Shown here: positions 43,476 to 62,834 of the stretch, in pieces | Position numbering within the stretch: position 1 is the first letter of the stretch | How the letters are laid out: each line of letters opens with the position of its first letter | Sequence record: OQ411014.1 | Length of the DNA: 64,000 nucleotides | Direction: 5' to 3' (one strand) | Position numbers and translations under genes: made by a program | The notes under the pieces: model-generated | Database searches by the model: none | Seen by the model: the letters and a program-made list of their open reading frames with translations, nothing else | Told to the model about the DNA's origin: nothing

Positions 43476-43509
43476 AATGCTTGACTTCGGTCGAGCATTC
43501 TTTTAATAT
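43476..43509 (+). promoter_or_regulatory. terminator/promoter hybrid cassette
   Basis: aatgcTTGACttcggtcgagcatt plus T-tract; TAATAT at a 17 bp spacer. Confidence 0.7.
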
Positions 43510-43549
43510 AATTGCATCAACTACACTACTACACTTGAGGATAACAATC

Positions 43550-43990
43550 ATGGCTTGGATTCACAGCAATCATTCTGAACTGAACAATTTCGATATCTTT
43601 GCATTCGTGAACATGCAAGAGAAGATCTTCATCAAAGGACGTCTCTGCACGCTCTCTGACGGCTCACGGGCCATCTGTAACATGAACAACAAGGGTGAAG
43701 TACTGGATATCGTTGCTCTTCCTGCGTGGGCTACTGTGCAGCCTGAAGAGGCACTTATGCGTCTACTCTTTGAAGAGATTGGTAAACTTCCAGGTACTGA
43801 TGTGGAGAACAAACTCTTCAACATCAAACACTCCAAGTACAGTGCTGACCAATTATCTGGTTTAACTGATACAGTACTGAAAGAAGTTGTAAGTAATCAA
43901 TGTAACGTAATTCTTAAGTACGTTCCTGAACTGGAACTGACTGAAGAAATGCTAGTGGAATTTGACATCAACGCTAAGGGTTCTCTATGA
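43550..43990 (+). CDS. early hypothetical protein
   Basis: GAGGA RBS before ATG 43550. Confidence 0.75.
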   Translation: MAWIHSNHSELNNFDIFAFVNMQEKIFIKGRLCTLSDGSRAICNMNNKGEVLDIVALPAWATVQPEEALMRLLFEEIGKLPGTDVENKLFNIKHSKYSADQLSGLTDTVLKEVVSNQCNVILKYVPELELTEEMLVEFDINAKGSL

Positions 43991-44349
43991 GACTAATCCT
44001 GTTACTGATTTTGTTAGTAACTGCACAGACGATACCATCTGATTCATATATCGATATAAATCCAGCACGTGAGTTCATTATTTGTACAGACAGAGTAGAC
44101 AGTACTAAAAAGATTGAAGTCCTCTTCGATTCAAGTACTCCAGAATATGTAGTGACGAACAAAGTACAGTACAAATTCATTTCTCACGAAGTTATTGGGG
44201 ATGTAGATGTACTTCAATATAAGTTCGGTTCAAAGACTATGAATTTTGAATTTATTATGCAAGGTGATAAAGTATCTTCTATTCGATTGGAAGTACTTGG
44301 TGCTATCCCTGGTATGGAATTCATGGATGGGGAGTGTAAACTGCTATGA
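43987..44349 (+). CDS. putative exported protein
   Basis: Signal-like N-terminus; Cys pair; beta-rich. Confidence 0.65.
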   Translation: MRLILLLILLVTAQTIPSDSYIDINPAREFIICTDRVDSTKKIEVLFDSSTPEYVVTNKVQYKFISHEVIGDVDVLQYKFGSKTMNFEFIMQGDKVSSIRLEVLGAIPGMEFMDGECKLL

Positions 44350-44690
44350 TTTCAGTACTGAATAGTATTAGTATTGTTGTTATGATTTTAGCCTGTACCT
44401 ACGCTATCCTAGCTGGGGTGCTCATCTTCTACAAGAAGACTAAGTTCTTGGGGTGGTTACAGATAAGTAAAACTGGCTATTGTTTTGTGTACGGAATAAG
44501 TGCCTTTTGTATATACAGGGATTTATTTTTAGGAGTACTTCCTCCTGATTTCAATGGGTACAACTTTAGTGCAGTGTTCTTATTGTTTTATATTGTACTT
44601 ATTGTGCTTGGTCTTTGTATACCGTATGTACTTATAGTTGGTGTTTCAAAGGTACTTGAGTACCGTAAACGTATTCCTGATGAGGATTGA
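44346..44690 (+). CDS. 3-TM membrane protein (paralog of 44694 and 54750)
   Basis: Three TM segments, ends RKRIPDED. Confidence 0.7.
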   Translation: MISVLNSISIVVMILACTYAILAGVLIFYKKTKFLGWLQISKTGYCFVYGISAFCIYRDLFLGVLPPDFNGYNFSAVFLLFYIVLIVLGLCIPYVLIVGVSKVLEYRKRIPDED

Positions 44691-44693
44691 TAA

Positions 44694-45023
44694 ATGAAGA
44701 TGGAAGACTTAGTAGAACTATTACAGCCGTACGCTACAGTACTATTTTTGATTGCTTCAATGTATACTGTTGTAACTCTAGTACTTGGATTCTTCAAGTA
44801 TCGAACACTAGCTAAACGCTTAGACGAGAACTTATGGCTCTCTGTTCCTAGTATCTTTAGTGTAGCTATTAGTATTGCAAACTATTTTATTGAAGATCGT
44901 ATGTTCGCTGCTATTATGTTATTATTTGTTTTGGTTGGGGTAACATTTGTAGGTACTATCTATGCAATGTGTAAAGGATTTGTGTACGTTCGTTCCAAGA
45001 TACCAGATCCAGAACAAGAATAA
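44694..45023 (+). CDS. 3-TM membrane protein
   Basis: Three TM segments, ends RSKIPDPEQE. Confidence 0.7.
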   Translation: MKMEDLVELLQPYATVLFLIASMYTVVTLVLGFFKYRTLAKRLDENLWLSVPSIFSVAISIANYFIEDRMFAAIMLLFVLVGVTFVGTIYAMCKGFVYVRSKIPDPEQE

Positions 45024-45031
45024 TTCTAATT

Positions 45032-45074
45032 AATGCTCACTTCGGTGAGCATTTTTTTTATTTTGTGATATAAT
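45032..45074 (+). promoter_or_regulatory. UUCG terminator whose 3' arm supplies the -35 of a class II promoter (GTGAGC-18-TATAAT)
   Basis: aatgctcac-ttcg-gtgagcatt, T-tract, tgtga-tataat. Confidence 0.8.
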
Positions 45075-45084
45075 TAAGCTATAA

Positions 45085-45640
45085 TCTCGATTAACCATTA
45101 TGGTATAAAGAAACCTAATCCACTCGAAAATGTAGAGGGTAGATGAGTTGAGTAATCGCAACGAAGTGCAAATGAAACCCGTTAGGTGAAGGCATAGTTA
45201 GTACCTCCCACGGCGACGCGGCACTATAAATGAGCATGGTAAGATGATATTGCTCACTCGATAGACGTATAGGATGAACACCTACCAAATATCTAAGGGA
45301 GTTCATCAAAAAGGCTGGCTATAGATCCGTCCAGAATTTGATGAACACAGTACTGAATTGACTGTATAGTTCAGTACTGAAGTGTAGTAAGACTACGACC
45401 GTTGCAGAACAGAGATAGGGAGAAACAGGGCAACCCGCTTCCGTATCGTAAGATAATTCTCTATACAGTACTCCGATGCTATCAGCGTCAGATTGTCGTC
45501 CCTCCCTTGTGGGGGGATGAAATTTCCTCAACAAATCTCGTCAGGATTGATTCAGTACTATTGATATTAAATGAATATTCAGTTATGATACGAAGTATCT
45601 AACGAATACCAGACTTCTCATAAGAGAAGGATGTGATGAC
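45085..45640 (+). ncRNA. large structured ncRNA, copy 2
   Basis: No credible ORF; own promoter; colinear conserved blocks and covarying stems relative to 2396-2905. Confidence 0.8.
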
Positions 45641-45654
45641 CCAAAGGAGATATA

Positions 45655-45903
45655 ATGAAGATTTTCAAATTTATTGCTGCTTCAGTACTAGCACTTTCCC
45701 TAAGTGCGTGTGATCGCGTAACAGAAGAACGTTCGCATGAGTTCGCACTTCCTTCTGAGTTAGTTCAAGCAGGATGTAAGATTTATCGTATGCGAGCTGA
45801 AAGTGGTGTAACTCTATATGCTTTGTATTGTCCTAATTCCACAACCACAACAAGCTACACCAGTGGTAAACAAACTCATCATGTCACTACGTACAGTAAC
45901 TAA
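45655..45903 (+). CDS. small lipoprotein
   Basis: Lipobox LSAC; AGGAG RBS. Confidence 0.8.
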   Translation: MKIFKFIAASVLALSLSACDRVTEERSHEFALPSELVQAGCKIYRMRAESGVTLYALYCPNSTTTTSYTSGKQTHHVTTYSN

Positions 45904-45905
45904 CT

Positions 45906-46676
45906 ATGTTCAAAATATCATACTACTCACCTAAGTGTATAACTGAGCTTACACAGTCAGAGATTGATGGTATTGACTGGACTGAAATAGATCCACCAAC
46001 AATGGATTCTATCCCAGAGGATTATCTACATCACGTCAAGAATCTTCCGATTCTCTTTGAAAAGAGAACACCTGGTACGGTCAGTGATGCGTGTCTTCGT
46101 AAGTTACTTCTCAAAAGCATGAAAGGACGTAGTACGTACTATCGTGATAGTATTTGTGAAAGTCTCTGTGACTGGGCTGGGCCAGAATTTAGTGCTAGAA
46201 ATGTGACAATGTTTGCACGTTTCATGCGAACTGGACCAATGTGGAGAACTAAACTCTACCTTATGAAACATAACATCATTAGCCTAAATGTTTACAGAAG
46301 TACCAAATCATTGAGTTCTGCAAACATGGAAGAAGTGCTGAGTTCTGTACATGTCCCAGTGCAGGAAAAGTTTGAGTACTTACTGCATTCGAATTACATT
46401 TTCGACAAGTACAATATCATTGACGAATCGTGCTTATTCGTTCATAATAAGTATCTCATAGATTTGGGCCTACCACCAATAGTGGTTAACCCTAACTCCA
46501 TGAACGAATATGAAGTACAAGAATGGAGTAATCTCGGATGTCTACAATGGGATGTTCTCCTTGATGCGTACCTTCGTGGAGAAATCGCTCCAGAATATCT
46601 GTATGACATTCATATGATGTTCTTTGATGAAAATAGCATGAAAGATAGAACCTTCTATTTTCGTGATAATGAATAG
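45906..46676 (+). CDS. hypothetical protein
   Basis: 256 aa ORF followed by terminator agtacagaaa/tttctgtact. Confidence 0.7.
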   Translation: MFKISYYSPKCITELTQSEIDGIDWTEIDPPTMDSIPEDYLHHVKNLPILFEKRTPGTVSDACLRKLLLKSMKGRSTYYRDSICESLCDWAGPEFSARNVTMFARFMRTGPMWRTKLYLMKHNIISLNVYRSTKSLSSANMEEVLSSVHVPVQEKFEYLLHSNYIFDKYNIIDESCLFVHNKYLIDLGLPPIVVNPNSMNEYEVQEWSNLGCLQWDVLLDAYLRGEIAPEYLYDIHMMFFDENSMKDRTFYFRDNE

Positions 46677-46722
46677 AATAATACAGTACAGAAACTTTTC
46701 TGTACTTTTTAAGAAAAAAGAG

Positions 46723-46750
46723 TTGACACAGATTTCAGTACTGATATAAT
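46723..46750 (+). promoter_or_regulatory. sigma70 promoter TTGACA-16-TATAAT
   Basis: Consensus hexamers; CAGTACTG abuts -10. Confidence 0.75.
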
Positions 46751-46987
46751 TACTACATCAAGAACGAACTAACTAAAACACTCAAACATAGGATTAAAAA
46801 TATGCCATATCTTCTGATTATTATCATTTCTTTCGGTGCAGGTATCTACAGTGGTAAAGTGATGTTTGAAAAAGAAATCACTGCTGGTGCTTGTTTGGAC
46901 AACAGTACTAAGTCCATCGGAGAGAAGTATGATGATATTATGAAAATCATCAAAGAATAATTCTACACTATACAAAAGGAAACAACT

Positions 46988-47311
46988 ATGAAAGCTCTAC
47001 GTAACATTATCGCTTATGCAGTAATCTCTATGGGTATGACCTTTGCAGCACATGCAAACAGTTCTATCCTATGTGAATCGGAAAATGGCAAACAGCACGT
47101 TATGAAACATAACAGTACTGTTATGACTGTTCACGGTGAAAACTTCAACTTTGAACAAACTGGCACTCTCAAGAGCGGTGCGGATGTATTTGTTTACTGG
47201 AACCAAGAGCGTACTAAACTATTGGCGGTAACTTCTGCTGATAAGCAAACTATTGTTTATCAAATCATGGATAAGCGTCAACGTGTACTTGACATGGGTA
47301 CTTGTAACTAA
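46988..47311 (+). CDS. putative exported beta-rich protein
   Basis: Signal peptide ending AHA; Cys near both ends. Confidence 0.75.
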   Translation: MKALRNIIAYAVISMGMTFAAHANSSILCESENGKQHVMKHNSTVMTVHGENFNFEQTGTLKSGADVFVYWNQERTKLLAVTSADKQTIVYQIMDKRQRVLDMGTCN

Positions 47312-47371
47312 TATACTTTATGGGTGCATTAATATTGATGCACCTAAAACAACTAGCTCTGGAGTTTAGAT

Positions 47372-47677
47372 ATGATTGGTGTAAATTGGAATATCATTGT
47401 ATTATGTGTACCGTTGTTATTCATGACTATTGCAATGCTTGTCCGAATGTGGAAGCCCAGCATCACTGAAAAGGATATCGGATTCAATCCGCTGATTCAG
47501 CTACTCGACAATGTTTTATGTATGTGGGTAGTACTGGCATTCGTTTGGCTCTATGTATTCAATGAAGATTATCTAAACGCCAGAGCAGCACTGTATTCAA
47601 TGATTGCACTTGGGTGGTTGTGGTTGACGTGCTTCACTATTCAAACTACAGTAAAGTTCTTTCAAAATAAGGGTTGA
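47372..47677 (+). CDS. membrane protein
   Basis: GGAG RBS; 3 TM. Confidence 0.7.
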   Translation: MIGVNWNIIVLCVPLLFMTIAMLVRMWKPSITEKDIGFNPLIQLLDNVLCMWVVLAFVWLYVFNEDYLNARAALYSMIALGWLWLTCFTIQTTVKFFQNKG

Positions 47678-47696
47678 CTTCGGTCAACCTTTTTTG
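47669..47696 (+). terminator. UUCG terminator of the hybrid-cassette type (no good -10 found)
   Basis: gggttgac-ttcg-gtcaacct plus T6. Confidence 0.8.
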
Positions 47697-47742
47697 AGCC
47701 TAATTTTGGGAACTTGATCTAGATCAATGTACAGGAGTAGTA

Positions 47743-51728: not shown

Positions 51729-52041
51729 GAGGAAAGCTAAGTTATGACGTACTTATCTATTGCAGTTGTTGTATTTTTAGTTTTAGTCGTTTGTGCATTT
51801 GGGTATCTCATGACTAAAGGTGATTGAATGTGAAATACATATTAGTCCTACTAGTATTATTCACTACATGCACAAATGCTAGTGCATTGAAGGAGCAGAA
51901 ATTCTTTGTATCCTTCTTTGCACCAGTACAAACGAAGCACATTAAATGGACGTATAATTCAAATCTACTAGAGTTGAATGAGCACAGGATTGGATTCGTT
52001 ATCAATTACGTGTGGTGAATAACAATTCAGTACTGAAGAAT

Positions 52042-52075
52042 GGGTTGACTTAGGTCAGCCCTTTTGTTATAAATA
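52042..52075 (+). promoter_or_regulatory. terminator/promoter hybrid whose -10 is also a T4-type late box TATAAATA
   Basis: gggTTGACttaggtcagccc tttt gt TATAAATA. Confidence 0.7.
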
Positions 52076-52120: not shown

Positions 52121-53641
52121 ATGCCAAATGATATGAAACACAAGAATGGTGCATTAGTACAACACTCTGACAAATGGAGTGAAGCTAATCGTCGTAAGAA
52201 TTCACACAACGCAGGCCAAGGATCTCGTGGCTCTCGCAATCAGGGGACTGGTGAAGCTGGTAAAGCTAATACAGTTGCTTCTGGTGGTATGGACACTTCC
52301 AATATGTCTCAACATGAGAAACTAAAGTACTTCAACAGTTTAGGACTCCTAAACCCTACACAGAAGAAGCAATTACAAGACATGGACGCTGCTGCATCTG
52401 CACCAAAAGAACAGCCACAGCAAGCTCCTAAAGCTGCTCCTGCTGGTAATCCTGTCAAAGAGCTATCTGATAACTTAGGTCGTATCTTTGCACAGAAGCC
52501 TAATCTAATTCAAGGTATTGTAAAAGAACTACAAGCAGTACCGAAGGAAGAGCTAAAGAGTAAAGCACAAGCTGTACTTGATGCTATGAAAGGCAATCGC
52601 AGTACTGAACCAACCGAAGTATTCAGTACTATCATGCGTGCACTTCAAGCTAAACCACAAGCTGCTCCAGCACAGAAAGCACCTAAGATGGACAGTGCAC
52701 AGGACATGTCAGATTTGTTTGGTAAAGTTGGTGCTGAAGGTAAGAACAACGCACAACAAGTCAAGAACGTCCAAGCTAAGATTATTGATCGTTTAGGTGA
52801 TAATCAAGACAAGACTAAGCGGGCATTTGACGCATTGAACAAAGCACTTGAATCTTATGTTCCTGGTGAGAAAGACAAGTTCCAGACCATCATGAACGCA
52901 GTCTTTGGTGAAATGAAGAAGTACGAAGCAGAGCACGGTGAGAAGGTATCATCTGATGGCTATATGATTCGTAAAGACGAAGAAGGTGCAGTAGACCAGA
53001 AAGATGCTCCTAAAGAGCAAGAAGACCTACCTGATACAGTTGATATGGATGGTTACATTTCTCGTCCAGATGAATATGACTTCGGTTCAGACAAAGAAGG
53101 TTATGAGTATGCTATGGACATTTATCGTTTCCTAGCTAAGAACTATGATTATGCTAACAAGTACGTAGATCAGTTTGTCAGTGCTTGGGATAATTACAAA
53201 GATAAAGGTTATGACTTCCCTGCGGAAGCTGCATTCTTTGAGTTAGGTAAACTACTCCAGAAAGATGGTGTAGAGATTGGCTCGAAAGAAGATACTTCTA
53301 GTCTAGATGCAGAATTGGCAAAAGACCGTCAAATGACACCAGGTTCTAAAGCTGAATTGAATAAGCTCCTATCATGGATTGTTGACATTGGTAAAAATGC
53401 TGGTAAAGATAACAAGAGTATCAACCGCAGTATTTCTTGGATCAATAATAAAATTGATAACAACGGGCGTAAGCTACAGAAAGCATGGAGTGATTTAGTC
53501 AATGGTGCAGATGAGATCGATATTGATTCTCCTGAAGCATATGAGTATGCGATGACGACTCTAGACAATTCCTTCCAGGACTATGAAAATGGTAATCTAA
53601 CTGCTAGTGAACAAGACATCATGCGTTCACACGGAAAATAA
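52121..53641 (+). CDS. 506 aa protein with low-complexity, A/P/Q/K-rich N-terminal half; possibly virion-packaged
   Basis: GGAG RBS; TATAAATA upstream; function inferred only. Confidence 0.7.
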   Translation: MPNDMKHKNGALVQHSDKWSEANRRKNSHNAGQGSRGSRNQGTGEAGKANTVASGGMDTSNMSQHEKLKYFNSLGLLNPTQKKQLQDMDAAASAPKEQPQQAPKAAPAGNPVKELSDNLGRIFAQKPNLIQGIVKELQAVPKEELKSKAQAVLDAMKGNRSTEPTEVFSTIMRALQAKPQAAPAQKAPKMDSAQDMSDLFGKVGAEGKNNAQQVKNVQAKIIDRLGDNQDKTKRAFDALNKALESYVPGEKDKFQTIMNAVFGEMKKYEAEHGEKVSSDGYMIRKDEEGAVDQKDAPKEQEDLPDTVDMDGYISRPDEYDFGSDKEGYEYAMDIYRFLAKNYDYANKYVDQFVSAWDNYKDKGYDFPAEAAFFELGKLLQKDGVEIGSKEDTSSLDAELAKDRQMTPGSKAELNKLLSWIVDIGKNAGKDNKSINRSISWINNKIDNNGRKLQKAWSDLVNGADEIDIDSPEAYEYAMTTLDNSFQDYENGNLTASEQDIMRSHGK

Positions 53642-53650
53642 GTAAAAATA

Positions 53651-53683
53651 AGGGTTGACATATGTCATCCCTTTTTGTATCCT
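53651..53683 (+). promoter_or_regulatory. terminator/promoter hybrid
   Basis: agggTTGACAtatgtcatccct tttt g TATCCT; 17 bp spacer. Confidence 0.75.
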
Positions 53684-53720
53684 ATCAGTACTGAATTAAT
53701 CCCAACTAAGGTGACAAAAC

Positions 53721-54041
53721 ATGGAACTCAAACAATACGACGCAGCAATCGAATTTATGGGTTATACTGAAGAGTACCCAAATGACTTCATCTATAAGCA
53801 CGATGTAGGGCGTGATCATTCAATTTATTTCATTCAGCATAAACAAACTGGTGTACGCATTGGTGTGAATGATACATATTCTGTAGCGAAGAACTTTTCT
53901 TCCTTCAATCATGTAAATTCAACTGTAGCAAAGAATGTTGTTGACACAGTACGCAAATTCATAGAGAATGAACGTCATCAGGAATCAGTTTCCTCCGACA
54001 ACGCAAGCCTTATGAAAGTGTTTGCTCACTATAAACTCTAA
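53721..54041 (+). CDS. hypothetical protein
   Basis: AAGGT RBS. Confidence 0.7.
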   Translation: MELKQYDAAIEFMGYTEEYPNDFIYKHDVGRDHSIYFIQHKQTGVRIGVNDTYSVAKNFSSFNHVNSTVAKNVVDTVRKFIENERHQESVSSDNASLMKVFAHYKL

Positions 54042-54355
54042 TGCTGAGACTAATCATGACTAATCCACAATCTGATTTTGATATTGAAGTGTATGTAGGT
54101 TCTAATGTGTACCCTGAAATCTTGTCAGATGTACAGGAACTGAAAGGTACAAGTTCAGTACTGCACTTTGAAGAACTTTGCGTGAAGTACGGTTCTATGG
54201 GTGATAAAGAGTTTATTGCATTCTACATGGAAGCGAGAAACTTGAAGTTTTTAGATGGTTCATATTTCAAAGTACAAGAAACAGTCGCAGCAGACTATTC
54301 AAAGAAATATGAAAGTTCAATCATTGACTTGTATAAAAAGTACGGAATCTTATAA
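54041..54355 (+). CDS. hypothetical protein
   Basis: TAATG coupling. Confidence 0.65.
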   Translation: MLRLIMTNPQSDFDIEVYVGSNVYPEILSDVQELKGTSSVLHFEELCVKYGSMGDKEFIAFYMEARNLKFLDGSYFKVQETVAADYSKKYESSIIDLYKKYGIL

Positions 54356-54364
54356 GGAACTCCA

Positions 54365-54742
54365 ATGCGTGTATCATATAAAGTAACTGAATTCAACAAA
54401 GATTTGTTAGTACGTTCTATGTTTGAAGATGCGAAATCATTCAAGTACTTCAAAATTGGATTAGATGCGTGTATTGAGATTCAGAAGTTGATAGATGCTG
54501 GATATATCATCATGGATAATGGTGAACCTATTCCACGGCATTATGAGTTCAAGATTGCATTTGACTCATTCGATTCAGTGCTTAGTATGCCGCGACTGGG
54601 ACCAGATGGGGTTATGTGGTTAGGTTCAACTATGGGTAACATTGAAGATACTGTGTTTGTGTATAAGAAAGAACTCAACGAAGCATTTGGTAAACTTTCT
54701 TACATCAAGCCAGAAGACCAATGTAAACTGAAATTTATTTGA
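54365..54742 (+). CDS. hypothetical protein
   Basis: AAGGA RBS. Confidence 0.7.
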   Translation: MRVSYKVTEFNKDLLVRSMFEDAKSFKYFKIGLDACIEIQKLIDAGYIIMDNGEPIPRHYEFKIAFDSFDSVLSMPRLGPDGVMWLGSTMGNIEDTVFVYKKELNEAFGKLSYIKPEDQCKLKFI

Positions 54743-54749
54743 GGTATGT

Positions 54750-55082
54750 ATGTTAGTATATAATTACTTCAGTTTTATAATCTTCATGATGTTTTCGCTT
54801 TATATCATCATGGGTAACGTTGCGTGTTTCTTGAAGCATTATAAACTCGCAAACAGATGGTTTATGATGACAAATCCTTGCTTCCCGAATTTCTGTGCAT
54901 TTATATCTGGGATTTTAGTACTGGTAGATTTGTTCTTGGGTATCTCATCGGAACAACCATGCTTCTCTGCGGTAGCGATGACATTTTTGCTCGTTGCAAC
55001 AGTCCTGGGTATTGTGTTTATCATCTGTACAGTACTGATAGAGTTGATTAGTGATTGGCGACGAAAGTGGCCTGAACAATAA
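54750..55082 (+). CDS. 3-TM membrane protein (paralog of 44346/44694)
   Basis: K.YKLANRW, three TM, ends RRKWPEQ. Confidence 0.65.
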   Translation: MLVYNYFSFIIFMMFSLYIIMGNVACFLKHYKLANRWFMMTNPCFPNFCAFISGILVLVDLFLGISSEQPCFSAVAMTFLLVATVLGIVFIICTVLIELISDWRRKWPEQ

Positions 55083-55090
55083 CATCATAA

Positions 55091-55124
55091 AAGGGTTGAC
55101 TTCGGTCAGCCCTTTCTGTATTAT
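55091..55124 (+). promoter_or_regulatory. terminator/promoter hybrid
   Basis: aagggTTGACTtcggtcagccctttctgTATTAT; 17 bp spacer. Confidence 0.8.
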
Positions 55125-55151
55125 ACATACATCAACTGAGAGGATAATTAA

Positions 55152-55580
55152 ATGCGTGTATTTCGTTTTGAATTAAAATATTCTATTCTTGAAGGTAAGT
55201 ACAACTCTATCATTACTGGTATGGGACCATTCACATGGTACTACAAAGATTACAGTACTGAAGCTGGCTACCGTGCACTTGAAATGAAAACGCTTGAAGA
55301 GTGTCAACCAGAGCCAGAGGATGATGGTATTCATGCTATTAAGAACGGATGGGCTTTTGGGTGTGACTCACTGGAATCGCTGTATGAGTTCTTTAATGCT
55401 GATATCCAGGCTTTGAGTGCTGCTGGGTTTGCAGTGTCTGAATATGAAGTTCCTTATCAGCACGTAGACATTGGTCTACATCAAGTACAGTACTACAAAA
55501 AGAGTGCACAATTGCTAGCTATCCATGATGTGAATGAAATATTCAAATCAGTACTTGACAATTGTACTGTTCAGTACTAA
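55152..55580 (+). CDS. hypothetical phage protein
   Basis: GAGGA RBS; GPF...PEP..D...FGC.S..L..FF motif. Confidence 0.7.
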   Translation: MRVFRFELKYSILEGKYNSIITGMGPFTWYYKDYSTEAGYRALEMKTLEECQPEPEDDGIHAIKNGWAFGCDSLESLYEFFNADIQALSAAGFAVSEYEVPYQHVDIGLHQVQYYKKSAQLLAIHDVNEIFKSVLDNCTVQY

Positions 55581-55612
55581 ACTATATCTAACTTAACAGA
55601 GGAATCAAACAA

Positions 55613-56224
55613 ATGACTAAATGTGCTTACGGTCTGGACTATTCCATCAATGGTAAATTCACATCTCTCGGCACTTCTAACGATTGGCGTGCCATTTTTG
55701 AGACATTCATTAATGATGTTATTAGCACATCAGTTGAAAGTGTTGAATATGCAATCCTCACGTTCAACGATGAACCGATTGTAAATTCAGTACTGGACGT
55801 TATTCTTTTTGGGATGGTAGAACACAAATATCGTGTAGTTCTTTTGAATAAAGAACGTGACACTATTATTTCATGTGCTTCTTACAACGAAACATATAAC
55901 ATGCGTGAATGTAATTTATGCTCTGGTATTATTGAAGTAAAAGCAGTAAATCAAAACAACTTATGTTTTTCATTGGGTAAGGACTTTTCATTTAGTAGTG
56001 CTGATTTTGAAGTGTTCATGAATGATTGGAATACTATGCATCTCAAGACTAAAACTAAAATTTCTAGCTTACAACGCCCTACTGAAGTTGCAAAAAACGA
56101 GAATACTATTCAGTACCATGTCAGTACTGAATTAGAGAAAGCAATCAAAGTAATTGATTCTAATCCAGAAGAAGCAAAGCGTATTCTTAACGTAATGCAA
56201 TATATGTTCACTAACAAAGGATAA
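55613..56224 (+). CDS. hypothetical protein, weak family C C-terminus
   Basis: GAGGA RBS; ends ...EEAKRIL. Confidence 0.7.
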   Translation: MTKCAYGLDYSINGKFTSLGTSNDWRAIFETFINDVISTSVESVEYAILTFNDEPIVNSVLDVILFGMVEHKYRVVLLNKERDTIISCASYNETYNMRECNLCSGIIEVKAVNQNNLCFSLGKDFSFSSADFEVFMNDWNTMHLKTKTKISSLQRPTEVAKNENTIQYHVSTELEKAIKVIDSNPEEAKRILNVMQYMFTNKG

Positions 56225-56229
56225 TTGAA

Positions 56230-56826
56230 ATGCTATTCAATAAAAGTAATTATTTTTCAGTACCGAAGGTTTCTGGCAAACCGCTCCAAATGACTTTTGA
56301 TATGAATATCAGTACTATATTCTATAATTTGCTTCGCATTCAAAATAATGATAAAGAGTTCGTCTTGGGTAAAGCAGCAATTTACAATTCAGATGATATT
56401 CCTTTGATTTGTGATTTTGATAAAATTCTTGAAGCAGCACGTTCAGCCACCAGTAGAGTATATAAATTCACTGTTTGTGATTTGTCACAGAAGGTACTTG
56501 ATTATAGTTTCTATATGGATGAAGAAAGTTTGAAGGTAAGTATCACAAATATCATCAATGCAGACATTACCCTTGATAAGAAACCGCACCTTTCGATCAC
56601 AGATAATGAGACTGGGGAAACTCGAAGTGGTACTGTGAATGAAATTTATGATCATTACTTCCATGCACAGATTGCACCTAAAAATGATTCTACTATGTCT
56701 GTAGTACTGGACATGGAAGAAGTACTGAATGAAATGCGTCCTATTATTCAGAATGGTACTGACGTAGAAAAGTCCAACGCAAAAGCAATCCTGGCGTATG
56801 TTGCAGCTAAATTGGCTAAACAATAA
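56230..56826 (+). CDS. family C protein (C-terminus shared with 61302-61964)
   Basis: LDMEEVLNEMRPIIQNGTDVEKSNAKAILAYVAAKLAKQ. Confidence 0.75.
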   Translation: MLFNKSNYFSVPKVSGKPLQMTFDMNISTIFYNLLRIQNNDKEFVLGKAAIYNSDDIPLICDFDKILEAARSATSRVYKFTVCDLSQKVLDYSFYMDEESLKVSITNIINADITLDKKPHLSITDNETGETRSGTVNEIYDHYFHAQIAPKNDSTMSVVLDMEEVLNEMRPIIQNGTDVEKSNAKAILAYVAAKLAKQ

Positions 56827-56863
56827 AAGAAAAAAGGAGACTTTGTAGTCTCCTTTCTTTTTA
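56826..56863. terminator. bidirectional terminator
   Basis: aaaggagact/agtctccttt flanked by A- and T-tracts between convergent genes. Confidence 0.85.
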
Positions 56864-58039
56864 TGGTAAATCAAATTCCGTATATGAATATTTGTATACA
56901 CCATCTGGTCCACGACCTGAGTATCGTAATTTACCAGAAGTAGTTATATATGCTGAAGTAATATTACTAGTACTGAATATGTTAAACACTGACTTCATAT
57001 CATTCACTGTACCGTTACCGAATGGTATCAGGTTAAGTTCATTGCCGTTGACACCAGTACTCAATCTTCCTGAAGAATTTGCTCCACAACCATATGCATT
57101 TGATGGGCTAAGAGCAACGTAACCAGTATTACTAGTATAATAACTTAGTAAACCAATAAAATTCTCTGTAGTGGCTATTTCAGTAAAGACTCTAATATTG
57201 ACAGAACTATTCACTCCATTACCTAAGTTTCCAGCATTCTGGCTTCCCGCAGCATATAGATGTGTTTTACCAGTACCGTCACTGTACAATATTGTGAATG
57301 CTGATTCAGTTAGACCAATATCAAAAACACTAAGACCTGGGTCTGGTAGTGGTACTTGTGTTAGCACATTTATTCTTGTATCTGGATGACCAATACCGAG
57401 TTGACCAAATGAGTTTGAACCTGAAACCCAAACACTTAAATCATTTTTTAATATCAGTACTGATGAATTAACAAATTCAACTTTTTGAACATCTGATGTA
57501 AGTTTTGAGAAAGTAGTTAGTGCAAGATAATTACCAGTTGCTAGTTGGCCTTGGTTATTAAAACCGCTTCTATAAAGATCACCATTGTTCATTAATATAT
57601 ATAATGCATATACACCAGCATGAACAGATGTTATTTGATTAAGATTCCCTGTACCTATACCAGCTTCAATAAATGGGGTACAATCAGTATATGATGTCAC
57701 AACTTCAGTAGATGATGTATTGCCAGTTTGAAAGCTACGGCGACCAGTATATAATAATTTTCCATCCATAGTTTTAATGATAACAAAACTTGTGTTTGTA
57801 CACCAAACATCTTGAACATCATCTCTGATTAAAGTCCACTCTAGCTTTTGTTCTGTTGGCTTTCCATCCCCATAGATATAATTATCAACTGTTCCTCCAC
57901 CGATACCATACAATCTGTTATCATCATATAATACCATAAATGCCGGACGAGACGATGCATAAGGTACTAATATTTTTGTAATTTCAGGTAATGAAGGTGC
58001 TTTATTACCATAATTAAGCATTCGTACAAAAGGTAACAT
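56861..58039 (-). CDS. RCC1/BLIP-II-like beta-propeller repeat protein, probably virion-associated
   Basis: Repeated G.N..GQL(G/A).G units; MLPFVRMLNYGN N-terminus of the kind recalled from this phage group; GGAG RBS. Confidence 0.8.
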   Translation of the reverse strand: MLPFVRMLNYGNKAPSLPEITKILVPYASSRPAFMVLYDDNRLYGIGGGTVDNYIYGDGKPTEQKLEWTLIRDDVQDVWCTNTSFVIIKTMDGKLLYTGRRSFQTGNTSSTEVVTSYTDCTPFIEAGIGTGNLNQITSVHAGVYALYILMNNGDLYRSGFNNQGQLATGNYLALTTFSKLTSDVQKVEFVNSSVLILKNDLSVWVSGSNSFGQLGIGHPDTRINVLTQVPLPDPGLSVFDIGLTESAFTILYSDGTGKTHLYAAGSQNAGNLGNGVNSSVNIRVFTEIATTENFIGLLSYYTSNTGYVALSPSNAYGCGANSSGRLSTGVNGNELNLIPFGNGTVNDMKSVFNIFSTSNITSAYITTSGKLRYSGRGPDGVYKYSYTEFDLP

Positions 58040-58085
58040 AATTAAATCTCCGTCTAATAATTATAATGTATTTACCAAAAAGGAC

Positions 58086-58114
58086 TTGACAGTACTGAAC
58101 AGTACTAGTAGAAT
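58086..58114 (+). promoter_or_regulatory. sigma70 promoter TTGACA-17-TAGAAT with two AGTACT in the spacer
   Basis: Read directly. Confidence 0.8.
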
Positions 58115-58148
58115 TGTATCCAAGATAACTCACTAAGGAATATCCAAA

Positions 58149-58439
58149 ATGACAACTGTTACTTATTATCAAACACGCCGCCTTTTTGACATGACTGAAG
58201 GGCGTGGCCCAATGATCAATGATTTGGCATTCACTGAGTACCGCCATGCTGAAGCATACATCAACTCCCAACCTGGTGTTATGGGTCGTCGCTGTAACTG
58301 GACACAAGAGCGTCATGCGTCTGACTGGGACATTCAAACAGTACACGCCAGGACTGAAGCCTATGATCCACAAGAAGAAGCACGTCAGCGTGCATTAGCT
58401 AAACTAACCAAAGAAGAACGTAAACTACTAGGACTCTAA
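58149..58439 (+). CDS. early hypothetical protein
   Basis: AAGGA RBS. Confidence 0.75.
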   Translation: MTTVTYYQTRRLFDMTEGRGPMINDLAFTEYRHAEAYINSQPGVMGRRCNWTQERHASDWDIQTVHARTEAYDPQEEARQRALAKLTKEERKLLGL

Positions 58440-58440
58440 T

Positions 58441-58653
58441 ATGACAGTACAACTAAAAACTTATAAAGAAGATGATAAAACATATGTAGCTACTGGTTTT
58501 ATCAAAGACAATGGCTTCCATCGTGCACACGATCAACGTCAATACACAGCAGAACGTGCTGGCGGTGAAGTACTCAACACTGACAGCTATGATGATGCAT
58601 TAGCTTTCATTGCTGCCGGACTAGGTAAACCAGAGCGGTTATATACGTTATGA
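58441..58653 (+). CDS. hypothetical protein
   Basis: AGGA RBS. Confidence 0.65.
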   Translation: MTVQLKTYKEDDKTYVATGFIKDNGFHRAHDQRQYTAERAGGEVLNTDSYDDALAFIAAGLGKPERLYTL

Positions 58654-58916
58654 AATACATTCTAGTACTTCTAAGTATCTTCTTTCTTACGGCATGTGAA
58701 CCGGAAGAAGAACGTGAAGAACGTATTGATGCGAAGTATCTGGTGGCGAATGATTGTAAGTACACTGGCGAATCCTTTATAAACGAAGAAACCATTATGG
58801 TGGGTCCAGCCCGTTTCTCTAGGCCAGAGGTCGTTGAGAAGCGTTATTACGTGTATAAATGCAGTCAAGAGCGGAAGGTTCTCGCTACAGTTCGATTTGA
58901 AATTGAAAAAGAATAG
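58650..58916 (+). CDS. small lipoprotein
   Basis: Lipobox LTAC. Confidence 0.75.
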   Translation: MKYILVLLSIFFLTACEPEEEREERIDAKYLVANDCKYTGESFINEETIMVGPARFSRPEVVEKRYYVYKCSQERKVLATVRFEIEKE

Positions 58917-58953
58917 TTGACACACAATGGGAGTACTGTATAATACTCCCATC
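58917..58953 (+). promoter_or_regulatory. sigma70 promoter TTGACA-16-TATAAT with -10 inside a hairpin
   Basis: atgggagta/tactcccat. Confidence 0.75.
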
Positions 58954-59143
58954 TTAACGACAAAAGAGGAATTGAAATGGAACGTGTATACTTGAACGTA
59001 ATCACTGGTGCTAAACGTAAGTTCATCGGCAAAGAAGGATATTTCTGGATGAACAATAAGCAGTGGGTTCCTAATGGTACATCAGAAGAACTCATCAAAG
59101 CATTACCATATTACAAAGTACTCTAACTATAGGAATCAATCCC

Positions 59144-59791
59144 ATGCTCAAAGATATATCAATTGATGTAGATGCACTGAATGAAGAGTACAAAGATAAA
59201 GGGATTGATTTTTTTGAAACCGTAAGGGAAAACCCAATTAATGGTTCAAAACTACAAGTTACAATGGGAGTTGTTAATCCATTACATCCAGCAATACAGG
59301 CAAAGAAACTACCTATTAGTACTAAACCAATACGCCTTATGCTCGCGGCACATTGTAGTACTGGTATCTATATGGGATTCCCATTACATGAAACTATTCG
59401 CAAGTACAGCAAAAGCGAAGTTGTTTCTCGTATGGTTGAGTTTGATTTGAGTACTGGAATGTGGTATGATTCTCATGAAGTGGCACAGTCCTTCAATGAG
59501 AAGGAATTACCTTCTGGAAAGGCTCCTGCCGATATTACTCGCTTGAGTAGTTCTTATGGTTTAGCTGATAACATCAAGCAAATCATCAAGCACTACAGAA
59601 AAGTAATTAACAGGAGTGACTTCAATGTAGTGCTGCATATTACGTACAACAATGAAAAGCAACTGGCTGGATTGCGTTGGCATAAATGCGGGAAGTACTT
59701 GGGTAAGCATAAACAGAAGCACGAATACTTAGAAGAAGATAATATAAAGAGTATTCTACAATTCCACCTTTATGTACTGAAGGAGGACTAA
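59144..59791 (+). CDS. hypothetical phage protein
   Basis: AGGA RBS; YG.AD..Q, RWHK.G.Y.G and FH.Y motifs. Confidence 0.7.
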   Translation: MLKDISIDVDALNEEYKDKGIDFFETVRENPINGSKLQVTMGVVNPLHPAIQAKKLPISTKPIRLMLAAHCSTGIYMGFPLHETIRKYSKSEVVSRMVEFDLSTGMWYDSHEVAQSFNEKELPSGKAPADITRLSSSYGLADNIKQIIKHYRKVINRSDFNVVLHITYNNEKQLAGLRWHKCGKYLGKHKQKHEYLEEDNIKSILQFHLYVLKED

Positions 59792-59955
59792 ATGAATCAT
59801 GATAAGATTCAAGAAATTGAAGAGAAGCGTAATCACTTAAACGCACTCACGTATGAAATGACACAGACTGCTGATGTGGTGATGGGAGTATTATCAACAT
59901 CCGCAGTTCTTTCAGTACTGATAGCGATTTATATATTTTTCTTGTCATGAAGTGT

Positions 59956-59984
59956 TTGACAATCTTAGTATCATCTAGTATGAT
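59956..59984 (+). promoter_or_regulatory. sigma70 promoter TTGACA-17-TATGAT
   Basis: Near consensus. Confidence 0.7.
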
Positions 59985-60016
59985 GTTTGTACTATAATGA
60001 TATAAGGAAATACAAA

Positions 60017-60262
60017 ATGAAATTTATTAGTGCAATTATTCTTTCGATGACTTTATTGGTTGGATGTTCAACTGATTTCATGAAAGAAGCATACGTTGGT
60101 GAAGTGAATGGACGTACAATCGTCTTCTTCAAAGATATCCAACGTAACGGTATGCAGTACTACACTCCGCAGTTTGCATCTGTATGCCGTGATATGTTCG
60201 GGGTAAGTTCACCATGTAGGATAAAAGAAACTGCAATCAAAAACATTCGTCCATACAAATAA
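60017..60262 (+). CDS. small lipoprotein
   Basis: Lipobox LVGC; AAGGA RBS before ATG 60017. Confidence 0.75.
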   Translation: MKFISAIILSMTLLVGCSTDFMKEAYVGEVNGRTIVFFKDIQRNGMQYYTPQFASVCRDMFGVSSPCRIKETAIKNIRPYK

Positions 60263-60273
60263 GGAAACACAAT

Positions 60274-60597
60274 ATGTTTATTCTTTCTTTCCCACTGTTC
60301 GTTCTGCTTATCTGTTATATTGCAGTAGTAGCAGTAGGTTCTAAGTACAAAGATCTCCCTGAATATCTGAACATTGGTGACGGTCAAACAAATTCGCTAC
60401 GCTTTGTTCTGGGTGCAACGTTTGTATCATTAGGGTTCCAAATTCTTGGTCTGTTCTTTGCGTTTGCAATTAGTCTAGGACTGTTGTTTTCAACTATTGC
60501 TTCAGTCCTTGCGTGGTGGTGGTTGTTTGAAACATTCCAGTCTGGTAAGATCAAGATCTGGTACAAAGATGCTAAAGCATATTTCGATCAGGACTAA
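60274..60597 (+). CDS. membrane protein
   Basis: AAGGA RBS; 3 TM. Confidence 0.7.
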   Translation: MFILSFPLFVLLICYIAVVAVGSKYKDLPEYLNIGDGQTNSLRFVLGATFVSLGFQILGLFFAFAISLGLLFSTIASVLAWWWLFETFQSGKIKIWYKDAKAYFDQD

Positions 60598-60652
60598 TTG
60601 ATTCATTGTTTCATCGGGGTTAACATGTGTTAGCCCTTTTTTGTAGGTAATA

Positions 60653-61036
60653 ATGCGAGCGATGATTAGTATAGATAAGAAAGGTGCAACTCGGATTGTA
60701 TTCTTGACGAAGAGATACGCAATCAAGATACCATCTTTCTATTCGTGGAAAATGTTCTTACATGGATTGATTGCTAATCTAAATGAAAGAGCATTCAAAG
60801 AGTACTCATGTTCTCCTGGTTCTGGATTATGCCCTACTGTATATGCGTCAGGAACGGGTCTAATAAGCATTCAGAAGAGATGTTTACCAGTACAGCACAG
60901 AGGTATGTTCTGGGTGGAATTGGCTCACCTAGCGTGCAGTACTGTACTACATGAGGACTTCTTTTATTCGGATGCGAAGCCTGAGAACTTCGGGTATATA
61001 GATGGGAAGTTAGTAAAATTGGATTACGGAGATTGA
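60653..61036 (+). CDS. minimal protein-kinase-like protein
   Basis: GATRIVF, YAIKIP, N..E, DAKPENFG, KLDYG in only 127 aa. Confidence 0.7.
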   Translation: MRAMISIDKKGATRIVFLTKRYAIKIPSFYSWKMFLHGLIANLNERAFKEYSCSPGSGLCPTVYASGTGLISIQKRCLPVQHRGMFWVELAHLACSTVLHEDFFYSDAKPENFGYIDGKLVKLDYGD

Positions 61037-61037
61037 T

Positions 61038-61226
61038 ATGCTAATTTACAATAACAATGGTATTAGAGTACTTCAGCATGAATACTTACAAGTGTTTCAT
61101 GTACAGAAGTTCATGGAGGGTGATAATCCTCGGAGCTATGGTCGTACGATGGATTACTTCACTGTAAAGGAATGCTATAGTATTCAAGAAGTTCGTGAAG
61201 TTGTATCTGAATTACTTGAAGAATAA
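61038..61226 (+). CDS. small hypothetical protein
   Basis: GGAG RBS. Confidence 0.6.
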   Translation: MLIYNNNGIRVLQHEYLQVFHVQKFMEGDNPRSYGRTMDYFTVKECYSIQEVREVVSELLEE

Positions 61227-61233
61227 TATTAGA

Positions 61234-61269
61234 AAGGGGTTGACTTCGGTCGGCCCTTTTTGTTATAAT
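61234..61269 (+). promoter_or_regulatory. terminator/promoter hybrid
   Basis: ggggTTGACTtcggtcggccc ttttt gt TATAAT; 18 bp spacer. Confidence 0.8.
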
Positions 61270-61301
61270 CATTACATCGACAACCAATAGGAAATCTAAA
61301 A

Positions 61302-61964
61302 ATGCCAATTCCATTGTTTCATGAAAGTAATACATTCACTATCTACAAAAATAATGGCGAACTGAAGACTATTCACTTCACTGGTCACAAAGTAGGTTTG
61401 TATTACAAGTTGTATTCAATCCTACGTAAGAGTCACAACTTCAATATGCCTTCAGTAACTGTACGTGATATTACAGGGCGGGTATTATCCAATGGAAACT
61501 TCTTGGATATCTATTTTGAGTTGATTGATGTATTGAAAGCAGAACACAAGTACTCAATCATGACGACCAATAGTGTTGGTGAAGATCTATATCACTTCCG
61601 TGATGAACCTGAAGGTGTACTGCAACAACTGAAGCATCTGAGAGATACATATACTAAAAATGGTGATCCGCGTCGTTTTGAATATCACACAGTAGTACGA
61701 AGAGATGACTCATCGTTTATTCGTAACAAGTTGGATTATTTGATTATAGAATACCAGAAAATTGCTGATGCAGAGAACTCAGAGAAAGCTGGCGAAACCG
61801 ACTGCATTGGTGAAACTGGCGAAATGGGGTTAGGTGTGTACCTGGAGTTCGATGAAGTAGTGAACGATATGCGTGAGCAAATCAAATCAGGTACTGACAA
61901 AGAGAAGATTGAAGCTAAAGCAGTACTGTCATATATCGCTACTAAAATAGCACTGAAACAGTAA
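61302..61964 (+). CDS. family C protein
   Basis: LEFDEVVNDMREQIKSGTDKEKIEAKAVLSYIATKIALKQ. Confidence 0.75.
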   Translation: MPIPLFHESNTFTIYKNNGELKTIHFTGHKVGLYYKLYSILRKSHNFNMPSVTVRDITGRVLSNGNFLDIYFELIDVLKAEHKYSIMTTNSVGEDLYHFRDEPEGVLQQLKHLRDTYTKNGDPRRFEYHTVVRRDDSSFIRNKLDYLIIEYQKIADAENSEKAGETDCIGETGEMGLGVYLEFDEVVNDMREQIKSGTDKEKIEAKAVLSYIATKIALKQ

Positions 61965-61969
61965 AATAA

Positions 61970-62004
61970 AAGGGTTGACTTCGGTCGGCCCTTTTTGCTA
62001 TAAT
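61970..62004 (+). promoter_or_regulatory. terminator/promoter hybrid
   Basis: agggTTGACTtcggtcggccc ttttt gc TATAAT; 18 bp spacer. Confidence 0.8.
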
Positions 62005-62034
62005 CATTTCAACTTCTGATGAAAGGAAAATTAT

Positions 62035-62283
62035 ATGTTCGCACTACGCCACAAAGAAACAAAGAACTTCATGTGTATTGATACACAGTGGGATTGCTTT
62101 GGTAGTACTGAAGTATTGGAAGAACACGCTGAGAACGTCTTTGTTGTTAGTGAACGTTCATTGTTGGAAGCACTAATTGAGGACTTCAATGCTGGTACTA
62201 ATGCATTCTCTCTGAACTTTCCGGTTGTTGCAGATCCAGAAGCATTTGTTATGTACGAAATTGTAGAACTTACTGTGAAATAG
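62035..62283 (+). CDS. hypothetical protein
   Basis: AAGGA RBS. Confidence 0.7.
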   Translation: MFALRHKETKNFMCIDTQWDCFGSTEVLEEHAENVFVVSERSLLEALIEDFNAGTNAFSLNFPVVADPEAFVMYEIVELTVK

Positions 62284-62300
62284 TATCATTGGAGATAACC

Positions 62301-62597
62301 ATGAAAGCACTGACCGCCGTAGAAATCAAAGAGCAATACAAAGATTTATTCGAGTTTAAACACAACGGTGAAGAATTCAAACGTAGTAGTACTGTACGTG
62401 ACTTCTTGAACAAACTCTTCTGTACTAAGTTCAAAGCTGCGTACATTACTATGCCTGAGCGTACTTCAAGTGCAGAAGATATCAAGAAGTTCGGTTTAGG
62501 TTGGGATGCACAATCAATCATCCTGGTGAATGCAGATGAAGAGCTAGTGTACTTGACTAACTCCGAGTGGGCTTCTTTCATGTATCTTCGTAAATAA
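62301..62597 (+). CDS. hypothetical protein
   Basis: GGAG RBS before ATG 62301. Confidence 0.7.
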   Translation: MKALTAVEIKEQYKDLFEFKHNGEEFKRSSTVRDFLNKLFCTKFKAAYITMPERTSSAEDIKKFGLGWDAQSIILVNADEELVYLTNSEWASFMYLRK

Positions 62598-62606
62598 GGA
62601 ACTATA

Positions 62607-62789
62607 ATGAAACTGAAACGTTATGACCGCAATCGTATTATGGATGCTTTGTATCGTGAAGAAATTTCACTCAATAAGGTGAAAGTGTACTTTATGTTAG
62701 AAGGACGGCTTCCAGCACGTAAAGCTAAACAGTTAGCTATTGAACTGTTGAACGAAGGTATTGAGTACTGGCATTATGACGGATATTGA
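62607..62789 (+). CDS. small hypothetical protein
   Basis: AAGGA RBS. Confidence 0.65.
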   Translation: MKLKRYDRNRIMDALYREEISLNKVKVYFMLEGRLPARKAKQLAIELLNEGIEYWHYDGY

Positions 62790-62800
62790 TTTGTGAAATA

Positions 62801-62834
62801 AAAGGTTGACTTCGGTCAGCCTTTTTCGTATTAT
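62801..62834 (+). promoter_or_regulatory. terminator/promoter hybrid
   Basis: aaaggTTGACTtcggtcagcc ttttt cg TATTAT; 17 bp spacer. Confidence 0.8.

Follow-up and report, generated by a model that had tools for sequence, protein, structure and literature searches.

Predicted composite terminator and sigma70-promoter cassettes of the PeSL kind in the early, hypervariable gene region of Escherichia phage EJP2

A unit of about 35 bp, in which a hairpin overlaps an apparent sigma70 promoter, recurs between the genes of a 64,000-nucleotide (nt) stretch of Escherichia phage EJP2 (OQ411014.1; 349,185 bp). This raises the question as to whether the unit ends one transcript, starts the next, or does both, and whether it also marks the points of gene gain and loss. 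The stretch, here called the window, is 100% identical to record positions 248001-312000, with window position 1 at record position 248001; coordinates below are those of the window unless given as record positions. EJP2 is a RaK2-like jumbo phage of the genus Asteriusvirus with E. coli as its host and a genomic G+C content of 37%. An earlier note, made from the window sequence alone, had placed eight such cassettes there and likened them to the promoter-early-stem-loop (PeSL) elements of T4-type phages. All eight are present at those sites, on the plus strand and between genes. We report here their sequence anatomy, the covariation of their stems, the coupling of hairpin to -10 and breakpoints that lie inside them. 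From this evidence, they are probably PeSL-type composites of terminator and sigma70 promoter, set in the early, hypervariable gene region of EJP2.

Anatomy and distribution of the repeated unit

The 12-mer core of the cassette, TTGACTTCGGTC, has seven plus-strand matches in the window at a tolerance of one mismatch, against 0.14 expected, and none of 100 shuffles reached seven. The eighth copy (53655), whose loop is ATAT, falls outside this set. Across the genome there are 14 copies, all on the plus strand and all in the early-gene region: 11 at record 291481-312939, three of which lie just past the window end, and three near the record ends, at 3916, 7447 and 346417. The main cluster starts directly downstream of the phage sigma-factor gene and is composed of short hypothetical genes, and this concentration of 11 of the 14 copies within record 291-313 kb fits a hyperplastic, ORFan-rich setting. 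No more than 8% of window 43000-64000 is shared with any other phage record, and across 50,697 phage records the part from 54001 to 64000 is nearly confined to EJP2. No Pfam family was found for 10 cassette-flanked open reading frames (ORFs), and an Rfam scan of window 42000-64000 gave no family reaching its gathering score.

Around each window copy the intergenic gap measures 53-102 nt, between plus-strand genes, and TTGAC lies 10-26 nt from the upstream stop codon. At 47674, the second copy of the window (47669 in the earlier note), the upstream TGA stop codon, that of EJP02_443, overlaps TTGAC. Wherever a copy has a -10, the next ATG follows it by 27-47 nt and is preceded by a Shine-Dalgarno site.

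Read as RNA, all window copies fold into hairpins, with minimum free energies of -11.4 to -17.7 kcal/mol and z scores of -3.3 to -5.4 relative to dinucleotide shuffles. The loop is UUCG in six of the eight (UUAG at 52045, AUAU at 53655), and each stem is followed on its 3' side by 3-6 U. Among the EJP2 copies the base of the stem changes by compensatory pairs, as in GGAG/CTCC, ATGC/GCAT and GGGA/TCCC. We examined covariation in 122 unique copies from EJP2, phage Turkey5 and 35 IMG/VR loci, for which TTGAC-N4-GTY and a -10 were the sole selection criteria. These criteria did not involve the four outer stem pairs, which are paired in 89% of cases; column shuffles give 75% +/- 0.9%, with none of 1000 as high, and each pair carries 9-24 double changes. 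The outer-stem test rests on these shuffles and double changes instead of on slid registers, a control that was uninformative toward the 3' side (0.85-0.88 versus 0.89) because the G-run pairs with C and U runs in several registers. Stem pairing reaches 93% on the sense strand versus 80% on the antisense strand, and G.U pairs are confined to the sense strand, which argues that the structure is selected in plus-strand RNA and not as a DNA palindrome. In 91 of the 122 copies, pair 5 (the first T of TTGAC) faces G, that is, U.G; this wobble preference may also avoid a mirror-image TTGAC on the antisense strand.

These data bear on the reading that the unit is a promoter only, its inverted repeat acting as DNA. 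The repeat could then be the operator through which a dimeric regulator, from phage or host, turns early transcription off, or it could be a cruciform or a target for recombination. The near-palindrome TTGAC-N4-GTCAA does resemble the sites of dimeric regulators, and the copy at 47669 and several Turkey5 copies are perfect palindromes. A DNA-binding protein on the PeSL stem has been speculated on before (Arbiol et al. 2010, PMC2839356), and terminator palindromes can double as transcription-factor sites (Fletcher, Forrest, ... Grainger, bioRxiv 10.64898/2026.08.19.745784). However, the symmetry is usually broken in such a way that RNA pairing is kept and DNA symmetry is not, as the U.G pairs and the strand difference attest, and the stem bases change by compensatory pairs. 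The RNA-stabilising UUCG loop is present in half of the copies and a U-tract after the stem in every one, and a dedicated regulator is unlikely to be common to the different phage families that carry the unit. An operator or cruciform in place of a terminator is thus quite improbable, and the composite of terminator and promoter is the reading that we retain.

For the promoter, we read as a -10 a hexamer 17-18 nt after TTGAC(T/A). Seven of the eight window copies have one (TAATAT, TATAAA, TATCCT, TATTAT twice and TATAAT twice) and the copy at 47669 has none, just as the earlier note had described. In the copies with a -10, the hairpin's 5' arm contains the -35, and its 3' arm together with the U-tract makes up the spacer, again as the note had drawn it. 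An extended TGn precedes the -10 in three of these seven, and an A-rich tract lies ahead of every copy. TTGAC is unchanged in all 14 EJP2 copies while the arm that pairs with it varies (GTCAG, GTCGG, GTCAA, GTTAG, GTCGA, GTCAT), which argues that the 5' arm is under sequence constraint beyond pairing.

An independent test of the promoter used 50 unique copies from viral contigs (IMG/VR), chosen by hairpin and TTT only. TAnnnT stands at spacer 17-18 in 46 of these (TATTAT in 19, TATAAT in 10, TATACT in 8), and TGn precedes the -10 in 41, whereas six displaced registers gave TAnnnT in 1-7 of 50. Phages of other families (a KVP40-type phage, PY100 and a Vequintavirinae phage) carry the identical unit, which favours recognition of the promoter by host sigma70 over recognition by the phage sigma factor. 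The predicted start lies about 7 nt past the -10, with the end of the U-tract about 10-13 nt before it. The hairpin would therefore not be part of the cassette's own transcript and would act only on RNA from upstream.

Breakpoints at cassettes in relatives and natural variants

The best partial relative of EJP2 is Turkey5 (PQ471516.1), which is alignable over 42% of the genome with a median identity of 71%. Only three segments are at least 95% identical between the two, and the two in the cassette region both have each end within 50 nt of a cassette. One (record 310023-310851, window 62023-62851; 97.3%) runs from 48 nt behind TTGAC of the cassette at 61975 to 45 nt behind TTGAC of the cassette at 62806. 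The other (record 312191-312690; 98.8%) runs from the cassette at record 312202 to that at record 312645. Between the cassettes at record 310806 and 312202, EJP02_480-481 are swapped in Turkey5 for an unrelated DUF4379 gene. The third segment, record 334388-335616, lies outside the window in a minus-strand array of RCC1/beta-propeller genes.

A single Turkey5 cassette is an exact hybrid of two EJP2 cassettes. At Turkey5 325092, the left flank of the EJP2 cassette at record 312645 (up to ...CATCGAAACGAA) is joined to the right flank of that at record 312939, which means that 294 bp, including a 43-codon ORF, are additional in EJP2 and lie between two cassettes with 48 identical bases in common. 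This hybrid has the signature of a crossover inside a cassette. In 121Q, homology begins 2, 8 and 8 nt before TTGAC of three EJP2 cassettes, and a half cassette lies at position 109862.

As the null for breakpoints we took gene junctions, 11 of 68 of which carry a cassette (16% expected). Ends of high-scoring segment pairs fell at cassette junctions in 8 of 18 cases against Turkey5 (P ~0.004) and in 5 of 11 against 121Q (P ~0.02), in tests that are small in number and not independent of each other. The proposal in the earlier note that cassettes serve as recombination points is borne out by these comparisons and by the metagenome contigs below; its expectation that indels end at cassettes held as an enrichment, with the remaining breakpoints located elsewhere.

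Public metagenomes contain natural variants of the region. In 20 runs, belonging to 15 studies (chiefly on bird, gut and compost metagenomes, and also on freshwater ones), 58-84% of the words sampled from window 54001-64000 are present, indicating that close relatives of EJP2 are widespread in nature. Over window 58001-64000, a contig from run X20 joins 62009 to 62866 with 21 other letters between and skips genes 477-479; its deletion spans from 5 nt past the -10 of the cassette at 61975 to the ATG of gene 480. A 39.6-kb contig from X3 carries 473 extra letters at 62011. Both the deletion and the insertion are at this cassette, the seventh in the window, and in metagenome contigs its core is followed by at least four sequences that both EJP2 and Turkey5 lack. 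We also considered loose contig ends at cassettes as evidence of variation and partly rejected them, since some of them are other EJP2 or Turkey5 cassette contexts. We counted as variation only the two joints and seven probes absent from both genomes, five of them sequences after a cassette core and two before a cassette.

Endonuclease genes are found beside cassettes in several of these sequences. A free-standing endonuclease gene of about 435 nt lies in the leader directly behind the Turkey5 equivalent of the cassette at 61975 (L059:21765-22199). Such a gene also follows a cassette in 121Q (L045, near 109279-109900), where the half cassette (GGGTTGACTTCGGTTACAC...) comes after it, and in the X3 contig (window 62011); EJP2 itself has none at the 61975 site. 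This arrangement suggests that the endonuclease gene may insert at or into cassettes. Taken further, the cassettes could be the ends or targets of an actively mobile element, whose dedicated enzyme (a homing endonuclease or recombinase) moves the modules in place of passive homologous recombination. The position of the gene directly behind a cassette in Turkey5, 121Q and X3 and the 121Q half cassette would fit such an element. Yet a simple crossover within the 48 identical nt would be expected to give the Turkey5 hybrid, most modules are without a nuclease gene, the 10 flanked ORFs have no Pfam family, and T4-type recombination needs only short homology patches of <50 bp (PMC2839356). We give a mobile element little credence as the mover of the modules, and it would in any case be compatible with the composite cassettes proposed here.

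Several observations weigh against that composite reading or narrow it. On the promoter side, the copy at 47669 is without a -10, the -10s at 52045 (TATAAA) and 53655 (TATCCT) are weak, and a generic sigma70 promoter scan of the region found no excess (67 sites versus 72 expected). The region also holds hairpin-free promoters and plain terminators. The U-tracts are short (3-6 U), with interruptions in the copies at 55096 and 43481, and may therefore terminate transcription only in part. None of the 20 public runs with this stretch is recorded as RNA, a raw RNA-seq run, X21, gave 0 reads on it and no transcript ends were seen, which says nothing against expression. About half of the synteny breakpoints lie away from cassettes, at which they are enriched and not confined, and the metagenome contig ends at cassettes are in part repeat-induced assembly breaks. 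That the unit is only a terminator or 3'-end stabiliser, its -35/-10 likeness a by-product of a hairpin and AT-rich tail in a genome of low G+C, is scarcely credible: a T-tract in AT-rich DNA is often -10-like, the copy at 47669 is predicted to work without a -10 and sigma70-like sites are not in regional excess, but the displaced registers fall far below the 46 of 50 given above, 41 of the 50 carry TGn, TTGAC stays constant while the opposite arm has freedom to change and C opposite G would pair better, and a leader, Shine-Dalgarno site and ATG follow every -10.

Individual cassettes and the modules between them

The cassettes and genes described one by one here are on the plus strand. Cassette 1 (43476-43509) lies between EJP02_434 and EJP02_435. 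Its hairpin, AAUGCUUGAC-UUCG-GUCGAGCAUU, occupies 43476-43499 (-13.4 kcal/mol, z -5.1), with TTGACT at 43481-43486, a spacer of 17 and TAATAT at 43504-43509; its ATGC/GCAT stem base covaries with GGG/CCC elsewhere. Cassette 2 (47662-47697) appears decayed. It is a perfect palindrome, GGTTGAC-TTCG-GTCAACC, followed by T6 (-15.8 kcal/mol), with no acceptable -10, and we read it as a predicted terminator only. Its Turkey5 counterpart (311587) retains TATACT at a spacer of 18.

Cassette 3 (52042-52073) combines a hairpin at 52042-52061, with a UUAG loop, with TTGACT at 52045, a spacer of 17 and TGt plus TATAAA at 52068-52073. Homology begins 6 nt (Turkey5) and 2 nt (121Q) ahead of its TTGAC. The gene behind it, EJP02_457 (52121-53641), encodes 506 amino acids with no Pfam family and forms a single-gene unit between cassettes in EJP2, Turkey5 and 121Q alike. 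Cassette 4 (53650-53683) closes the unit in EJP2; its hairpin (53650-53673; -11.4 kcal/mol, z -3.3) has an AUAU loop and one U-U mismatch, with TTGACA at 53655, a spacer of 17 and TATCCT at 53678-53683. In cassette 5 (55090-55124), the hairpin spans 55090-55115 (-16.8 kcal/mol, z -5.4), TTGACT starts at 55096, the spacer is 17 and TATTAT occupies 55119-55124. The unit EJP02_462-464 begins here and closes at a two-way terminator at 56830-56859.

A further hairpin at 60616-60643, GGGGTTAAC-ATGT-GTTAGCCC followed by T6, has lost TTGAC and has no -10; this apparently decayed, cassette-like terminator resembles the 'half PeSLs' described by Comeau et al. (2014, PMC4122927). Cassette 6 (61232-61269) has its hairpin at 61232-61261 (-17.7 kcal/mol), TTGACT at 61240, a spacer of 18 and an extended -10, TGtTATAAT, ending at 61269. 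Between it and cassette 7 lies a single-gene module, EJP02_476 (61302-61964). This gene is missing from other E. coli Asteriusvirus records, and its homologs (~52% amino acid identity) are found only in Salmonella and Klebsiella RaK2-like phages. We considered whether it is a cassette-flanked module elsewhere and rejected this, as the homolog in Salmonella phage 7t3 comes third in line after a cassette and has no pair of cassettes to itself.

Cassette 7 (61968-62004), the junction point in the natural variants, has its hairpin at 61968-61995, TTGACT at 61975, a spacer of 18 and an extended -10, TGcTATAAT, ending at 62004. The module behind it, EJP02_477-479 (62035-62789), is the one that is 97.3% identical in Turkey5 and skipped in the X20 contig. 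Cassette 8 (62800-62834) has its hairpin at 62800-62825, TTGACT at 62806, a spacer of 17 and TATTAT at 62829-62834. The copies at record 312645 and 312939 share its 48-nt core (GGTTGAC ... CATCGAAACGAA) without a difference. EJP02_480-481 (62866-64000) fill the space from cassette 8 to the cassette that follows it, at record 312202, just beyond the window end.

Some related sequences differ from the common form. At 45032-45075 a hairpin without TTGAC, AATGCTCAC-TTCG-GTGAGCATT, is followed by T8 and then by an extended -10, TGaTATAAT; it adjoins, on the upstream side, a gene-free stretch at 45085-45640. Judged by its layout, this is a second, putative mode of terminator-promoter fusion that does without a -35. 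The cassettes at record 3916, 7447 and 346417 share about 35 further bases past the -10 (CATCGAAACAAT.TAGCCCAC.GGGTGCA...), with no ORF start nearby, and Turkey5 has four copies of this extended type at 9578-18888. A separate palindrome, CAGTACTG (AGTACT core), is very frequent near EJP2 promoters and between genes, for example at window 52025-52040 and 53686-53695.

Proposed mechanism and relation to known systems

We infer initiation, termination, early timing and the recombination pathway from sequence, as follows. As DNA, the A-rich, UP-like tract, the -35 TTGACT, the spacer of 17-18 nt and a -10 that is often TGnTATAAT would make a strong host sigma70 promoter, with a leader of 25-45 nt and a Shine-Dalgarno site downstream of the start. 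As RNA arriving from upstream, the same bases would form a G/C-clamped UUCG hairpin with 3-6 U, an intrinsic terminator placed about 10 nt before the next start; the -35 would be its 5' arm, and the 3' arm plus U-tract would double as the promoter spacer. Host sigma70 RNA polymerase would initiate at each cassette early in infection, transcribe the one to four small genes of the unit and stop, probably only in part, within the next cassette's hairpin and U-tract. By analogy with bacterial promoter-coupled terminators, polymerase bound at that next promoter may reinforce termination.

The same units, as direct repeats of 48-80 nt, could provide portable homology for the deletion, insertion and exchange of modules, inside one genome as well as between co-infecting phages. 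With repeats of this length, ordinary homologous recombination between cassettes would be enough to move whole modules. Because each gene or small group would have its own start and shielding, a module would stay expressible wherever it lands. Such a process would account for the early regions of these 350-kb phages being almost isolate-unique, and the cassettes would mark the sites of gain and loss of accessory genes, which probably serve host take-over or counter-defence. The examples are unusually clean, with 97-99% identical modules in genomes that are ~71% identical and an exact hybrid cassette. As a natural insulator and strong promoter of about 35 bp, the unit may also be a useful part in phage engineering.

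The closest known elements are the PeSLs of T4-like phages. Those of RB49 and phi1 combine strong sigma70-like promoters with transcription-terminating stem-loops, lie in hyperplastic regions and are sites in which indels end (PMC2839356). The EJP2 cassettes resemble PeSLs in their A-rich tract, sigma70-type -35/-10, G/C-clamped stem-loop and Shine-Dalgarno site with ATG, in their intergenic placement within ORFan-full hyperplastic regions, and in that indels and replacements between relatives end in them. The published consensus for nt-1/KVP40 PeSLs is A3-4G3-loop-C3T3-4 with a -35 of TTGYVH and a -10 of TAWWAT (PMC4122927). In the KVP40-species phage phi-pp2 we found seven units, AAAAGGGTTGAC-N4-GTCAGCCCTTT..TATTAT, that are nearly identical to the EJP2 cassette, the one behind rIIB almost base for base, and the unit shared by the two phages fits that consensus. 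The likeness to PeSLs drawn in the earlier note therefore holds at the level of architecture and sequence, and by the same evidence we would assign the EJP2 units to the PeSL kind, in its KVP40-type form. There are also differences. EJP2 is a RaK2-like jumbo phage and not a member of the Straboviridae, and this extends PeSL-type modular shuffling beyond T4-like phages. In RB49 and phi1 the stem-loop mostly separates the -35 from the -10 or overlaps the -10 (PMC2839356), and in PST it lies upstream of the promoter, whereas the EJP2 -35 is always in the 5' arm. Finally, promoter and terminator activities of PeSLs were measured with lacZ fusions, and mini-circles detected by inverse PCR, in RB49 and phi1 (PMC2839356), while the EJP2 cassettes are known from sequence.

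The near-identity with phi-pp2 raises the question as to whether the cassette itself travels. The unit is 80-85% identical over 55-68 nt across RaK2-like phages, KVP40-type phages, a Vequintavirinae phage and PY100. We think it rather doubtful that a single cassette of about 60 nt has moved between unrelated virulent phages of enterobacteria and vibrios instead of being reinvented in each lineage. The spreading unit would comprise the A-tract, GGGTTGAC-UUCG-GTCAGCCC, the T-tract, TGnTATTAT and the recurrent start region CATCGAAAC. The start-region motif is not required by promoter or terminator rules, and ATCGAAAC, allowing up to one mismatch, is found in 9 of 52 copies, from contigs that differ widely in size, versus a background of 1.3%; it is present in three of the seven phi-pp2 copies. 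The form (C)ATCGAAAC(GA) stands behind the -10 in cassettes of unrelated phages (window 62829-62850; L082, L084 and L085; IMG/VR loci L025, L032, L047 and L058). Counting against spread, we found no cassette-adjacent gene common to different phage families. There may be a near-single best solution for a TTGAC hairpin with a stable tetraloop, a G/C clamp and an extended -10, so that convergence could explain most of the cross-family identity. Horizontal spread of the cassette itself, if true, would provide RaK2-like, KVP40-type T4-like, Vequintavirinae, PY100-like and other phages with a common adapter for the exchange of ready-to-express early genes.

Among RaK2-like phages, forward matches to the core pattern number 13 in 121Q and 14 in RaK2 and are clustered in both. 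For phage CBB, 18 RpoD-like sigma70-type promoters with an UP-like element have been predicted, concentrated before short hypothetical genes beside the gene for the phage sigma factor and also within the terminal repeat (Buttimer et al. 2017, PMC5259590). This distribution is the same as that of the EJP2 cassettes. The CBB paper treats the sites as promoters only and mentions no stem-loop, terminator overlap, PeSLs or breakpoints (PMC5259590). The EJP2 paper does not discuss phage promoters, and a literature search for the core sequence returned only unrelated primer matches. In the literature searched we did not find this cassette type described for RaK2-like phages; the principle itself is already published.

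That principle has recently also been described in bacteria. In bacterial promoter-coupled terminators, the DNA of the stem-loop is the -35, the T-tract is the spacer and the -10 follows directly (bioRxiv 10.64898/2026.08.19.745784). These elements lie between tandem genes and are dual-function in vitro and in vivo, both functions need the shared bases, and promoter occupancy increases termination; the termination site lies about 8-11 bp ahead of the next start (within 35 bp, mode ~10 bp) (bioRxiv 10.64898/2026.08.19.745784). The EJP2 cassette shares the order of stem-loop, T-tract and -10 and the placement between tandem genes; its distance from U-tract end to start, about 10-13 nt, is predicted from geometry, where the bacterial sites were mapped. 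The 2026 preprint mentions neither phages nor PeSLs, and the cassettes described here would link that work with the phage PeSL literature, which it does not cite. The two differ in their genomic form: the bacterial elements are single-copy, sequence-diverse and not reported as recombination linkers, whereas the EJP2 units are a family of near-identical repeats.

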